Origin: Haliotis rufescens | Lineage: Eukaryota | Assembly: GCF_023055435.1 (NCBI RefSeq) | Contig: NW_025963779.1 | Location: 21,328,001 to 21,392,000 of the forward strand | Length of the DNA: 64,000 nucleotides | Direction: 5' to 3' | Shown here: piece by piece, positions 3,401-8,689 of the stretch | How the letters are laid out: the number at the start of each line of letters is the position of its first letter | Numbering within the stretch: position 1 is the stretch's first letter | The notes under the pieces: model-generated | What the model was told of the DNA's origin: nothing | Database searches by the model: none | What the model saw: only the letters and a program-made list of their open reading frames with translations | Translations under genes and position numbers: made by a program

Positions 3401-6400
3401 TATGGCAAGCACGGGTTTGTGAAGACCTATACTCCCCCGGATCTTCAAGGGTGCACACACACGAGGACGGAGGGGGCTTCATACATTGTAACATTTGTAT
3501 CAACGTTGTACCAGTCTTCGTTAACCACTGTGCTAACCTTGCCTCGACTAATGGAACAAGATTTTCTTTCATTATACTTACCCTGTTCAATGATCAACCC
3601 ATATGAGAATGGGGAGATTCCCAACATGTTGAGGAGAGTTGACTCGGACTGTCCAACTCTATCTCCAGTCTTTATCAGATTCACAGCATTCTAGGAAAGA
3701 TGATCAAGACCAAGGTGAATGGAGTACCAGCGTTAGAAATTGGCACTAAAGTACTCATGGAAATGAAAAAAACCTGTTTTTCTCAATTTAAAAATCGACA
3801 CAAAGTGTTACGTAGCTGTAAATACGAAATAACAAAACAACTCGAAAAGTACTAGTCTGGATTTGCTAGTTTGATCTCCGTGAACAATACAAAATGTACC
3901 TTACAGGAGGTAATTTGTTGGCACTTTCAACATTCAAAAATTAAACTAAGTCCAAATTGACATAGCAGAAACAGACTATAGGCATTATGCACCTGTTCTC
4001 ACCTGTCATCAAGGTGTCATAGTTCACCTTGATCTACTTACACCTGGTTATGCCCTGTTTCACAATAGTCTGTTTTATTCACATTTTCACACACTTTTAC
4101 GTGTAAAAAGGCATAAAAACATTTGATACGCTGTATTTGTGCCACGGCCCAAATAGTACTAATTTAGTTGTTTGAATATTTACATATTTTGTATATTAAC
4201 TGGATTTATTTAAGATCTGAGGTCGAAAAAACAGTTTTTTTTCCATTTCCGTGAGTTCTTTAGTCCTGTAGTCCTTACCAAACTGCCCAATAGTAAAGGT
4301 ATCCTAAGGACTAGTAGAAATTGGCCCATTTTAAGGGTTTTGCTATATGTTATCATTATAAGGACTAGTGGTAAAAGCTGTTAGTTTCTAACCCTGAGTA
4401 CAATAGGCTCATCAAGAACATAACTTGGTCAGTAGAAAAGAGAAAATCCTGGATCATTGTCCACTAGGAAAAATGATTATAATTTAGATTTCTTCACAGT
4501 AAGAAAGGAACGACTATGGTTTTATGCTGATTTAGCAATAGCCCATGCTAGAAGTGCTGTTTCCAAGATGGTGCGTATTGCGATATGAATCTTTTTATAC
4601 CAATACAATAATGCACTGTTCAAGAGGCTCATGTCATGGCAGCAGAGGCCTCCTGTTACCAGTTTTCAATATCTTAGATGGTTCCTTGAAAACAATATCC
4701 ATTGCCAAAACATTGCCATTGCATGTCTGTATCACTGCCAGGCTATGTACACAATGTACTCATGGATGTCACTGGCACTGAATGAGTGACTTGGGTTTAA
4801 CTCTGTTTTGAACAGTATTCCAGTTATGATGTGGGAGGAAAGCCTGAAGGGATGCAAGTCTTGGATGTTTACCGATTTGGTGAAACCCATGACAACAGGT
4901 ATGGTGCCAACAAACCGAGACACTAATTAGGGGTAACTGGGTGAGTGAGTGAGTAAGTTTTAACGCTGCTTTTAACAGTAAGTTCTATCATGGTGTGTCA
5001 GGAGGAAAGCCCGAAGAGATGCAGGTCTCAGACATTTACCACTTCGGTGAAACCCACGAGCATGGGTATGGTGCTGACAAACCTAGAAACATAATTGGGG
5101 CGAACCGGGATTCGAACCCACAATCATAGGTTTCTGGCGTGCCCAAGGGATGAAACTCTGCACAGCGATATGCGGCACCTTAGACAACAGAGCCATCTGT
5201 GTCCCCAGAATAAACATTAGTGAGGGAGAAGTGTTTTACACAATTTACAGCAACATTCCAGCAATATCACAGATGGGGGACACTAGAAATGGGCTTCACA
5301 TATTTATAGCATGTGGAGAGTTGAACCCAGGCCTTTGACATGATGAGCAAATGTTTCTAGCAAGAAAGGACAAAAAAGACTTTTTCAATGAGATACAAAG
5401 CGTTCATGTACCAGAATTTCAATGGTGCCTTTGGTGATTTTGGTAGGAATCTGAAGGGCCTGGAAGAAAGAGGTCTTCTCGGGTCCGAGGACGGTGTGCT
5501 GGGCAGGGACCGTCACATCCAGGGGGGCAACAGCTCCCACACGGGCAGGGGCCTTCACTTTATTCTCCATGATGACAGTTCGGATGTCAGTGAGATCTTC
5601 CTTGCTGAATACAAATCCCACATTGCCTCGGATGTGTGGCAGCAACCTGCAACATGAACGTCAGTCAGCACCATTCTCCCGCGGCATGCTACACTGGCTT
5701 CATATACATTCTAAAAACCTGTCATTACTGACTCCTCGCCATGATCATCCATGTTCTATCAGCATGAGGTTACAATTTGCTCAGACAGCCAAAATGGCAA
5801 GATGTTGCTCTCCGTGTCACAAAAACAACAGTGGGTTCAGCCATTTCTGGCTCTATCGTTTGGCTATGTGACGCTCGCAACGCTTGCTGGATCATCATTG
5901 CAGTTCAGTGAACATGGCTTGGGTTAAAACATCTTGCTAGTGTTCACCTGATCACAACCTATACATGTAAATGCATACACCAGTACTGAGAATTCCTCCC
6001 CCTTCACATATTACTAATTTTCAATCTACTTCATTACCATACTTATGTCCAACACAATTTCATGACTAAGTTGGCGAGGGTTTCTGCAACAAAATGCTGC
6101 TTTTAAAAGTATTTCATTTAACAGTAATTATTAAGCTGATATAATGTTTGAGGAAAGCAATGCAGATTGTAGATGTTGACCAATATGAATATGATGCAGT
6201 CCATGCCTAAAGCCTTTAAGTTGATTACCTCTTTCTGCACTAGTTTCAGTATGAAAATAGGCACAGTGAAATGGGGTTTAACGGCCCATTCAAGATTACT
6301 GCACTTATATCGCGACATGCATTCACGTGTGTGGCTGCTCCCTTACAAATGTTGATTTTATAGTGTTAGCTCACGGAGATACCATGCCACAGTGTAACAT

Positions 6401-8689
6401 GAATACCCCACTCAGACAGTTTACCGACCTGTTTTATTGCCATAATGCCGAGCGCCAGGCAGGGTAACAACAAGTACCATCTCTTAATGTCTTTTGATAT
6501 GACACGGCCCTGGACCTCCTGCTCTCCATGCTGACGCTCTACCACTAGACCACAGAGGCAGTCCAGTGTTAATTTTAAAAATCCATGCATTGGTATGGGT
6601 CTGACAGACTAATGATCAGAGTGAGTGGGTACGGTTTTATGCCGCTTATAGCAATATTCCAGCAACATCACGGCGGGGAACACCAGAAATGGGCTTCACA
6701 CATTGTACCCATGTCATGAATCGAACCCGGGTCTTCAGCATGATGAGCGAACGCTTTAAGCACTAGGATACCTACCGCCCCCTAATGATCAGAACAAATA
6801 TGAGACAAACTTACTTCTCTAGGGCTGGGTTGTTCTCCAGATGGCCCCTAATGGCCTTTCTCATCATGGTGTTCTTCCCCATCAGTACAACTGAAACCAG
6901 ATTGTGGCAGGGCAATGAATGATTTGGGAGACAAGCAAACATTGAATAGTGTATGTTAAATTCAGCTTGGCCAAATATACGAGAAACATAGCTCTACATT
7001 GAAAACACTAATGTTTATCTCCATTCCACAATGACAAAAATAAATCTGAATTACAGAAATACTGACACTAGCTTACATCTACTTTATTGCTTTCAAAAGA
7101 CTCAGGGAACAAGTCATTCATTCATAATTAGTCATGTTGATCCAGAAAACATGTTACATTTGCTACTTTGAATCATCAGCTACGTTAGGCATGACCTAAT
7201 AAAGACTTATGCAATGTCAAAAGTGACTTGTTGATGCTGGTATTGTGCAAATGTTTTTTGCACTTTAACTGTGGAATCAACTTGTAACAGATGTTTTGTT
7301 TGTTTTTCAGTACCAAACTCAGCAATATTCCAGGTAAACAACAGCGGCCTGTTATATCCAAGGAGGGTCCAGACAAACCAGTGATTGATTCGAGAAATGC
7401 TCCCCCCCCCCATGCTAAGGGTACAAAGATATGCAATCAAGTCACACAAATAATTGATGACTGACAACCTGAAAACCCCACAAAGTGTCAAACGATACAC
7501 CAACAATTATGCACCGTGATACAATACATACAGCGAGTGAGTATGGTTTTACGCCGCTTTTAGCAATATTCCAGCAATATCACAGTGGGGGACACCAGGA
7601 AGGGGCTTCACACATTGTACCCATGTTGGGAATCGAACCCTGGTCTTCGGCGTGACGAGCGAACGCTTTAACCACTAGGCTACCCGACCGCCCACAATAC
7701 ATACAGACCTATATCATGATACGATAGAAAATCCATATTACTTAAAAGAATTACCATAAATGCGTAAATGCAGACTACAAATGTGCTGTTTTGCATCATT
7801 TTTCGTTTCCCCATTACTTTGATTTGAACAGTTAATAAAGTATACTGCCATTCTTTCAAGCATCTGAAATACACGACTATTTCAGTTAATAGTATTTGTT
7901 CTGTAGAATCGAGATATTTATCCCATTGTGGCCTTCTGTATCATACTTAATTGAAATTATCTTTGTGACAAGCAGCCTTGTGTTATGAACAATATGCACA
8001 AGCAGTTATAATAAGATTGGGTGGTCAATATAGACCAATCAAAATAGGTGAAGTAATTGCTCCATATTGGCCATGTGGGATACCTTGTGGCATAAAGTGT
8101 TGACTCAATCATACTCCCCATTCATGCTCAGACAGCCAAAATGGCAAGATATTGCTCTCTGTGTCACAAAAACGACAGTGGGTTCAGCCATTTCTGGCTC
8201 TATCGTTTGGCTATGTGACACTCGCAACTCGCTGGATCATCATTGCATGAGGGTATTGGTCTTGATCTGTTTGCCTTCAAACTTTTAAGTGGATGGCCAA
8301 CTCCAATTTGTGTTTCCTGATTTTTAATTCATGCATTTCTTACCTCCTCTCCCTCGTAGGGCCTGTCGGATCTTCTGCATCTGCTTGGAGCCGACATTGT
8401 CCGCACCCACTATGAAACATTTGGGAAATTCATCCAGAAGTTGCTGAAGAATAACACATTTTATTGATAATATTTGTTCATAGTCACCATAGATGGCCCT
8501 TATTGATTATACTGTTGTACATAGAATGTAAATGCTTAAATTTACTCACTAGGTAGATGTACTGGTTTTCTTAAAATGCATTATCATTGTCAGTGGTATT
8601 GGTGTCGTCCAGCAATGTCAGATGTGGCTACTTACGACAATCTTAAGGAAGTAGTTCGACTTCCAGGTAGATCTGTCTTCCTTGACCAT
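477..8689 (-). CDS. RPLP0: 60S acidic ribosomal protein P0 (uL10), 8 coding exons, 311 aa
   Basis: Coding exons: 8689-8636 ([18 protein letters not shown]), 8443-8344 ([26 protein letters not shown]), 6890-6815 ([24 protein letters not shown]), 5646-5412 ([13 protein letters not shown]...[19 protein letters not shown]), 3690-3582, 3137-3061, 1237-1097 and 620-477 (ends [16 protein letters not shown], the P-protein C-terminal motif). All introns are GT-AG and the total is 936 nt in frame. AATAAA at 385-390 (-). Confidence 0.97.
2002..2075 (-). ncRNA. SNORD59: Box C/D snoRNA, SNORD59/snR54-like, copy 1 (RPLP0 intron)
   Basis: - strand: GGTGTTTG-A-ATGATGC (box C)...TACTTTCGTTCT-A-CTGA (D')...TGAGGA (C')...CTGA (D)-CAAACACC, with an 8-bp terminal stem. 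The guide ACTTTCGTTCT is complementary to the conserved 18S sequence AGAACGAAAGU, and the D'+5 rule points to the A equivalent to human Am1031 / yeast Am974. Confidence 0.88.
2751..2823 (-). ncRNA. SNORD59: Box C/D snoRNA, SNORD59/snR54-like, copy 2 (same RPLP0 intron)
   Basis: Boxes C, D', D, the guide and the terminal stem are identical to copy 1. Differences are confined to C' (TGACGA) and the C'-D spacer. Confidence 0.88.
3728..4396. mobile_element. Nested MITEs: CAGYGTTAGAAATT-type element interrupted by a second TIR element (~3749-4260)
   Basis: Outer termini CAGCGTTAGAAATT and TTAGTTTCTAACCCTG are flanked by AGTAC. The inner ~35-bp TIR begins AAGTACTCATGGAAATG. Relatives of the outer family lie at ~25235-25381, 34152-34271, 61000-61110, 62070-62171 and 63397-63500. 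Confidence 0.7.
5778..5902 (-). ncRNA. SNORD22: Box C/D snoRNA, U22 (SNORD22)-like, copy 1
   Basis: 125 nt, TGCA-ATGATGA...CTGA-GCA. The internal AG-AGCCAGAAATGGCT-GAACCCA-CTG and the 3' mini-hairpin followed by TGTCTGA match my recollection of vertebrate U22 (CAGAGCCTGTAAAGGTGAACCCACTG...CTGTCTGA). Confidence 0.8.
8122..8250 (-). ncRNA. SNORD22: Box C/D snoRNA, U22 (SNORD22)-like, copy 2
   Basis: Near-identical to copy 1 while the flanks are unrelated. Terminal stem TCATGC/GCATGA; internal stems GTGTCACA/TGTGACAC and AAACGATAG/CTGTCGTTT; AGCCA-GAAA-TGGCT hairpin. Confidence 0.8.

Follow-up and report, generated by a model that had tools for sequence, protein, structure and literature searches.

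The window, i.e. the whole stretch of 64,000 nt of the Haliotis rufescens genome (contig NW_025963779.1) analysed here, harbours the gene for ribosomal protein RPLP0, and two adjacent introns of this gene each carry an RNA of the box C/D small nucleolar RNA (snoRNA) type. We consider it likely that these RNAs, termed copy A and copy B, derive from paralogous, intron-encoded snoRNA genes that do not act as guides and that are members of a divergent invertebrate lineage of U22 (SNORD22). By sequence and predicted fold, both are members of a C/D family whose lineages have diverged deeply and which has the central module of U22, and they are probably a divergent invertebrate relative of U22 residing in RPLP0, albeit one that stays outside formal membership of the Rfam family.

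Copy B comprises 126 nt and copy A 128 nt, and both lie within 1-2 bases of the positions given in the first-pass annotation of the window (Table 1). That annotation had described two near-identical C/D RNAs of about 125 nt with unrelated flanks, and boxes, stems and pairwise alignment bear this out: the copies are about 94% identical, differ by five substitutions and one 2-nt indel, and the alignment ends exactly at the RNA ends. The RNAs have the general hallmarks of box C/D snoRNAs, i.e. a C box (RUGAUGA) near the 5' end, a D box (CUGA) near the 3' end and a terminal stem, which has 5 bp in copy B (CAUGC/GCAUG) and only 3 bp in copy A. Both copies follow the same layout: AUGAUGA comes after the first half of the short terminal stem, a spacer of about 35 nt leads to a long hairpin and another of about 20 nt to a small hairpin, and UGUCUGA and the second half of the stem complete the RNA. 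The long internal stems, the AGCC hairpin with its GAACCCA core and the 3' hairpin before TGTCTGA, all named in the first-pass annotation, were located in minimum free energy (MFE) folds. In copy B two stems, P1 (AAACGAUAG/CUGUCGUUU) and P2 (GUGUCACA/UGUGACAC), surround the core, so that the GCC-loop-GGC hairpin and the GAACCCA following it lie within a long stem, and a GCC-AUUUU-GGC hairpin directly precedes UGUCUGA.

The two genes appear to be the only ones of their kind in this animal. A BLAST search with copy B hits two places in the 1.33-Gb assembly, copies A and B, and a covariance model of the family (R1, see below) likewise returns these two only when run on the whole genome, 150 of the 274,507 first-look candidates being scored. 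With two copies in the genome the element is not a transposon, and the high copy number that would have spoken for one is excluded.

The host gene is on the minus strand, with both RNAs in sense orientation. RPLP0 had been proposed as host before, and our reading of the exons together with the match of exon 4 to the Pfam domain RL10P_insert confirms it; exon boundaries and splice sites were read by eye, and the exons were searched singly. A protein search with the exon-4 peptide yielded 181 fragments of at most 79% identity, mostly unnamed. Downstream of exon 4 there are four further exons, leading to the acidic C-terminus encoded near 477-626. Copy B is located in intron 2 (6891-8343), where 95 nt separate it from the 5' splice site and 1232 nt lie between it and the 3' splice site, and copy A in intron 3 (5647-6814), where its 3' end lies 129 nt upstream of the 3' splice site.

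That the RNAs represent a family is indicated by metagenome contigs. These were scanned with a pattern of the 21 bases in which the window RNAs agree with the SNORD22 consensus line, permitting a spacer of 1 or 2 nt between the core hairpin and GAACCCA. The scan yielded 14 matches, spread over 13 contigs, and in each of them the spacer has 2 nt. A C box lies at most 75 nt upstream and UCUGA at most 80 nt downstream of each match, and the resulting RNAs are 121-130 nt long, once the boundaries of those in L011, L018 and L014 had been corrected by eye, and have the same layout as the window RNAs. In 596 Gb of bacterial and archaeal genomes, used as control, the pattern matched once, in a GC-rich sequence without boxes. 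One boxless match in the control versus 14 boxed ones means that the metagenome matches are not due to chance and that the family exists.

Together with the window pair the sequences fall into about seven groups, the others being L017; L022; L013; L015 and L016, which are identical; L011 and L018; and, as the largest group, L010, L012, L014, L019 (two copies), L020 and L021. Outside core and boxes most pairs from different groups share 17-36% identity, with 53% for L017 and L022 and 50% for L011 and L010. The RNA of L017 is located in an RPLP0 intron as well, the exon 3 peptide of this contig being the same as that of the window at 25/25 residues; exon 4 is split in two in L017, and the snoRNA lies in the next intron downstream. 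Other hosts are eIF3c in L013 (E 1.4e-16 to solved eIF3c chains), an Hsp70 of the Hsp110/Sse1 type in L015 and L016, and SPT16 in L022. No recognisable exons are present in the contigs of the largest group, whose host is possibly non-coding. Paired copies on the same strand, 0.9-1.4 kb apart, recur in L019 (8017-8137 and 9416-9537) and L011 (1657-1777 and 2628-2752). The L011 copy at 1657-1777 was not selected by the pattern; it scores 69.3 bits with R1 and keeps 25 of the 26 core bases, AA in the loop being changed to GA. Two further observations concern these contigs: L022 4415-4494 (minus strand), about 500 nt downstream of the L022 snoRNA, is a weak match to the family model (15.7 bits, E 0.61), and L011 592-712 (plus strand) forms a long, near-perfect hairpin that scores 35.5 bits against the plant microRNA (miRNA) family MIR7696 (cut-off 83) and probably is an inverted-repeat element instead.

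All members share the module CAG-A-GCC(6-nt loop)GGY-N-GAACCCA-CUG, with UAG for CAG in the window copies, which is constant over at least seven very different lineages, the remainder of the RNA having become nearly random between them. The residues shared across the family delimit a core, as had been anticipated. RNAalifold, applied to an alignment of 15 sequences (A2, from which R1 was built), predicts P1 as a stem of 9 bp closing on the core, and a 4-bp hairpin, GCC(A)/(U)GGY. Compensatory double changes occur in 7 of 13 pairs, P1 can pair in 94.4% of the cells compared with 17-49% in slid registers, and the covariation score observed was not attained in any of 500 shuffles. When the sequences are folded one by one (MFE), most members form this central hairpin too, usually with a second stem and with GAACCCA as a bulge on the 3' side; the folds of copy A, L011 and the second L019 copy differ from it. 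A kink-turn was also considered for the core and rejected, the bulge being too short by eye.

How closely this family is related to U22 may be judged from the Rfam SNORD22 model (RF00099; gathering cut-off 50 bits). At gathering thresholds the window contains no snoRNA match. When thresholds are permissive, both copies match SNORD22 better than any other snoRNA family, over model positions 1-126, with 20.6 bits (E 0.85, 6-kb search) for copy B and 14.3 bits (E 1.5, 201-base search) for copy A; the letters that coincide with the consensus are the boxes, AGAGCC, G, AA, GG, GAACCCACUG and CUGUCUGAG. Thus, the significant SNORD22 match that the first-pass annotation had looked for did not materialise, and neither did the better match to another family that it had named as speaking against U22. 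Apart from one extra spacer base, the length of about 125 nt, the central module AGAGCC..GG.GAACCCACUG and the full-length alignments agree with SNORD22, and so do the position of the module in a long stem and the hairpin before UGUCUGA, established by covariation and folds for the family and by eye for vertebrates. U3, U8, U13 and U14 had no Rfam match at E up to 10 over 4500-10500 or 5740-5940.

The link to SNORD22 is an indirect one, made by the relatives. Searching the 13 contigs against all 4227 Rfam families, SNORD22 matches L022 5000-5129 with 41.1 bits (E 2e-5) and L017 8-136 with 36.2 bits (E 4e-4), and, with E up to 1, none of the 14 RNAs has a match in another snoRNA family. The remaining 12 RNAs, although selected by the same pattern, have SNORD22 E values above 1, so core and boxes alone are insufficient for such scores, and the additional 15-20 bits of L022 and L017 come from matches that the printed alignments place throughout the remaining sequence. 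Host gene, core and layout tie the window RNAs to L017, which in turn has a statistical tie to SNORD22, so that homology is the simplest reading, short of proof.

Several observations weigh against an assignment to U22. The window copies stay far below the SNORD22 cut-off, and even the best relative, at 41.1 bits, remains under 50. A SNORD22 search of the whole genome returned nothing at or above 50 bits and only two matches, of 24.7 and 23.4 bits, both dismissed as chance, since one lacks both boxes and 54 model positions and the other, which has no C box, represents an intron-exon junction; nevertheless, these two non-snoRNA sequences of the same genome outscore the window copies, so that the Rfam score of the latter carries no weight by itself. 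Moreover, the relatives were chosen by a pattern of consensus positions, which inflates both their SNORD22 scores and the apparent invariance of the core. The equivalent of P1 in vertebrates, a 10-bp stem CUAGucCCAG/CUGGGgCUGG around the module, was read by eye, as was the GUUCC-AGAA-GGAAC hairpin before CUGUCUGA, from the Rfam consensus line. The role in 18S ribosomal RNA (rRNA) formation rests wholly on vertebrate work, as cited in the relevant parts of PMC7277114 and PMC6600647. Finally, two miRNA-seq runs with the same species label have no reads on the snoRNAs and none on the exons (3 and 11 reads placed; 21.6 and 18.3 million records), and in run X1, in which the exon is spliced and has a depth of about 1220, the snoRNA bins have depths of 0.1-4, i.e. 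intron level, the sole contig over copy A continuing into the intron. Both kinds of library are ill-suited to an RNA of 126 nt, and the miRNA runs, being empty over highly expressed exons as well, are a weak negative.

Conservation of the RNAs is suggested by run X15, from a related organism (contig depth about 34), which covers about 238 snoRNA bases of both copies, all but 5835-5842 in copy A and 8182-8189 in copy B. Among the differences listed, copy A has none and copy B has one substitution (8230) and a CG insertion behind 8227. The non-repeat intron flanks show at least 25 substitutions and at least 7 indels in about 1080 bases, a rate that predicts about 5.5 substitutions in the snoRNAs, compared with the one observed among the differences listed (Poisson P about 0.03). 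Measured against this flank rate, the snoRNA pair is kept in the related organism, where, as in the two window copies, boxes and core are intact. Just after box C, at 8227-8230, copy B differs from copy A by a 2-nt deletion and a substitution, and copy B of run X15 has the copy-A form, so the change is young or the copies exchange sequence. Repeats in and around the gene were noted as well: the intron of copy B contains a short interspersed nuclear element (SINE) derived from a tRNA at 7521-7693 (tRNA-like match at 7618-7689, minus strand), which is missing from the contig of run X15, where 7520 is joined directly to 7694, and which is therefore a recent or polymorphic insertion. Similar tRNA-like matches are found at 13478-13549 (minus strand) and 1697-1768 (plus strand), the summed contig depths of these repeats being in the millions.

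The alternative that survives best is that the RNAs form a separate, orphan box C/D family of invertebrates, which acquired a U22-like motif by convergence or exchange of modules and which, not being orthologous, could have another function. Outside core and boxes the window RNAs have no detectable similarity to the SNORD22 model, as their low scores testify, all 14 metagenome members have the 2-nt spacer instead of the single nucleotide of the vertebrate consensus, and the hosts RPLP0, eIF3c, the Hsp110-type protein and SPT16 differ. Against this stand the 15-20 bits that L022 and L017 gain over the window copies outside the core, along the full length, as well as the features shared with U22, namely length, the place of the module in the RNA, the stem around it and the hairpin that precedes box D. 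The diversity of hosts argues little, as snoRNAs often switch host genes. We regard this alternative as unlikely.

It is highly improbable that the RNAs are guides for methylation or another modification, using either the CUGA in GGCUGAACCC as D' box or a target in a small nuclear RNA (snRNA), transfer RNA (tRNA) or messenger RNA (mRNA). The window copies, L017, L022 and L013 have this CUGA in their core, and the complementarity search, which was restricted to Watson-Crick pairs without G-U pairs or mismatches, had the ribosomal DNA (rDNA) unit as its sole target, which leaves some room for such a role. Within this scope the longest run is 9 nt for copy B and 10 nt for copy A, shuffling copy B 200 times gives 8-13 nt, and no antisense element to rRNA exceeds the shuffles, which agrees with the earlier impression that there is no methylation-guide complementarity. 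The sequence before box D varies freely between lineages, which would not be expected if it guided modification of a conserved target. A C' box is absent, the CUGA of the core is UUGA or UAGA in other members and GUGA in the vertebrate consensus, and the bases upstream of it are paired in a hairpin. Taken together, the lack of a long rDNA match, the variable region before box D, the absence of a C' box and the variable CUGA make a methylation guide unlikely.

Individual candidates for contacts to pre-rRNA were discarded. A match of ACCCACUG to 18S 1296-1303, presumably not retained in vertebrates, and the 10-nt match of copy A about 610 nt upstream of 18S are both of chance length; the idea that the core hairpin mimics an 18S hairpin GAGCC..GGCU beside GGGUUC fails as the 18S rRNA of this animal reads GAGCA there; and a duplex scan of the snoRNAs against pre-rRNA produced whole-length duplexes with huge loops that were judged meaningless. 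The rDNA unit on contig C399 has 10,419 bp with an 18S gene of 1859 nt, and contig C595 contains 18S copies exactly 10,000 bp apart, which looks like an artefact of assembly or scaffolding.

Least probable of all is that there is no stable RNA and that the element is a cis-acting intronic structure for splicing or expression of RPLP0 or a decaying snoRNA relic, for although the blank small-RNA runs, the contig depth at intron level, the 3-bp terminal stem of copy A and the 1232 nt between copy B and the 3' splice site would suit it, those runs are equally blank on highly expressed exons, neither the two copies nor their counterparts in the related organism have lost boxes or core, and the element occurs in introns of unrelated hosts, one of them possibly non-coding, which fits a trans-acting RNA and not a cis element tied to one host.

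If the window RNAs are U22 relatives, as we favour, a mode of action may be envisaged. The C/D boxes and the terminal stem would provide the assembly site for the core C/D proteins fibrillarin, NOP56, NOP58 and SNU13, and, as with intronic C/D snoRNAs in general, splicing would be followed by debranching of the intron and by exonuclease trimming that sets the RNA free. The snoRNA might then act as U22 does in Xenopus, i.e. as a factor for the processing of pre-18S rRNA, with the constant module rather than an antisense element as its working surface, to which a protein could bind or which could make an RNA contact, either short or tertiary. The loop search that had been suggested found no complement of GAACCCA in the rDNA unit of this animal. 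On the more speculative reading that follows, the module, having no 7-nt complement there, would probably bind a particular protein or engage in a tertiary contact.

More tentatively, we speculate that U22 is a snoRNA of ancient animal origin, going back at least to the bilaterians, that its sole constraint beyond the boxes is the 26-nt module, i.e. the GCC/GGY hairpin and the GAACCCA bulge closed by CAG/CUG, presented on a covarying stem, and that this module may be the functional centre in 18S processing, a part that would then fall neither to an antisense element nor to the AG-rich strand discussed below. U22 is among the few snoRNAs needed to make, and not to modify, 18S rRNA. If the family is U22, the RNA would be far older than vertebrates, and the near-random divergence elsewhere would isolate a structured module of 26 nt as target for mutation, crosslinking and structural work on pre-ribosomes. 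The Rfam SNORD22 model misses these relatives, and their annotation needs a family model such as R1.

RPLP0 hosts two further snoRNA genes, a pair of SNORD59-like C/D guides in a single intron downstream (Table 1). The copies are 89% identical over 170 nt including the flanks, and as the identity extends into the flanks a segment of the intron was duplicated. Upstream of the D' box the guide ACUUUCGUUCU is complementary to 18S 1007-1017 (11 nt), with A1010 as predicted methylation target, which we take to correspond to the human SNORD59 site. Compared with SNORD59 (RF00273), the pair shares this D' guide and differs in scores below the cut-off (38.3 and 34.0 versus 45) and in their location in one RPLP0 intron. 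The first-pass annotation had seen in RPLP0 a cassette of four snoRNAs serving 18S biogenesis; there are indeed four genes, occupying three introns, and the SNORD59-like pair has its 11-nt 18S match. All four are linked to 18S rRNA by prediction or homology, and sharing a ribosomal-protein gene with two 18S guides would couple the supply of the U22-like RNA to ribosome production. Elsewhere in the window, a run of N at about 10180-10330 causes open reading frames to translate as X.

Table 1. Features of the RPLP0 locus discussed in the text (window coordinates)
Feature	Position	Strand	Evidence and remarks
U22-like box C/D snoRNA, copy B	8123..8248	-	RPLP0 intron 2; Rfam SNORD22 20.6 bits, E 0.85; family model R1 95.5 bits
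C box AUGAUGA, copy B	8237..8243	-	
Central long hairpin, copy B, bearing the core (P2 8 bp, P1 9 bp)	8161..8221	-	MFE fold; P1 covariation in the family
Core module, copy B, AG-A-GCC(AGAAAU)GGC-U-GAACCCA-CUG	8176..8201	-	
D box CUGA, copy B, after UGU and the GCC-AUUUU-GGC hairpin	8128..8131	-	
U22-like box C/D snoRNA, copy A	5776..5903	-	RPLP0 intron 3; Rfam SNORD22 14.3 bits, E 1.5; R1 99.1 bits
C box AUGAUGA, copy A	5892..5898	-	
Core module, copy A, identical to the copy B core	5829..5854	-	
D box CUGA, copy A	5781..5784	-	
RPLP0 first coding exon, from initiator ATG, 18 residues	8636..8689	-	By eye
RPLP0 exon 2	8344..8443	-	By eye
RPLP0 exon 3, between the two introns bearing U22-like snoRNAs	6815..6890	-	By eye
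RPLP0 exon 4	5412..5646	-	Pfam RL10P_insert E 3.2e-13 (5412-5645 peptide); spliced contig of run X1 ends exactly at 5412
SNORD59-like C/D guide snoRNA, downstream in RPLP0	2754..2820	-	Rfam 38.3 bits, E 1.3e-5
Second SNORD59-like copy, same intron	2005..2072	-	Rfam 34.0 bits, E 2.2e-4

U22 itself is needed for pre-rRNA processing by a mechanism described as unknown in the part of PMC7277114 that deals with it, and its requirement for 18S maturation goes back to work in Xenopus (Tycowski 1994, as cited in passages of PMC7277114 and PMC2943600). Its distribution is given as vertebrates only in a section of PMC2943600 (2010) and as metazoan-specific in one of PMC6600647 (2019). Our literature searches, which did not extend to the Rfam species list and supplementary tables, where invertebrate entries may exist, found no paper describing an invertebrate U22. 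Recently, human SNORD22 has been assigned a role in splicing via a 34-nt AG-rich target-binding region, according to a portion of a preprint (10.64898/2026.04.02.716167, 2026). The AG-rich strand described there corresponds to the freely covarying 3' strand of the present family, in which it is not conserved.

U3, U8, U13 and U14 are, like the window RNAs, C/D RNAs that are mainly non-methylating, longer than guides and equipped with conserved extra domains (as outlined in parts of PMC2943600 and PMC6600647). They use defined base pairing with pre-rRNA, whereas none was found for the window RNAs in the rDNA unit. From vertebrate U22 the window RNAs differ in the spacer between hairpin and GAACCCA, which has 2 nt here and throughout the family and 1 nt in the vertebrate consensus, in their canonical C box UGAUGA, in sequence that is unrecognisable outside the core, in scores below the Rfam cut-off and in their host, a protein-coding ribosomal-protein gene instead of the non-coding UHG/SNHG1 (the vertebrate host named in the excerpts of PMC7277114 and PMC4378963). 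Nevertheless, both are intron-encoded box C/D RNAs of about 126 nt without an rRNA antisense element, and both carry the module AGAGCC, G, AA, GG, GAACCCACUG at the same position, surrounded by a stem of about 10 bp and followed by a small hairpin before (C)UGUCUGAG.

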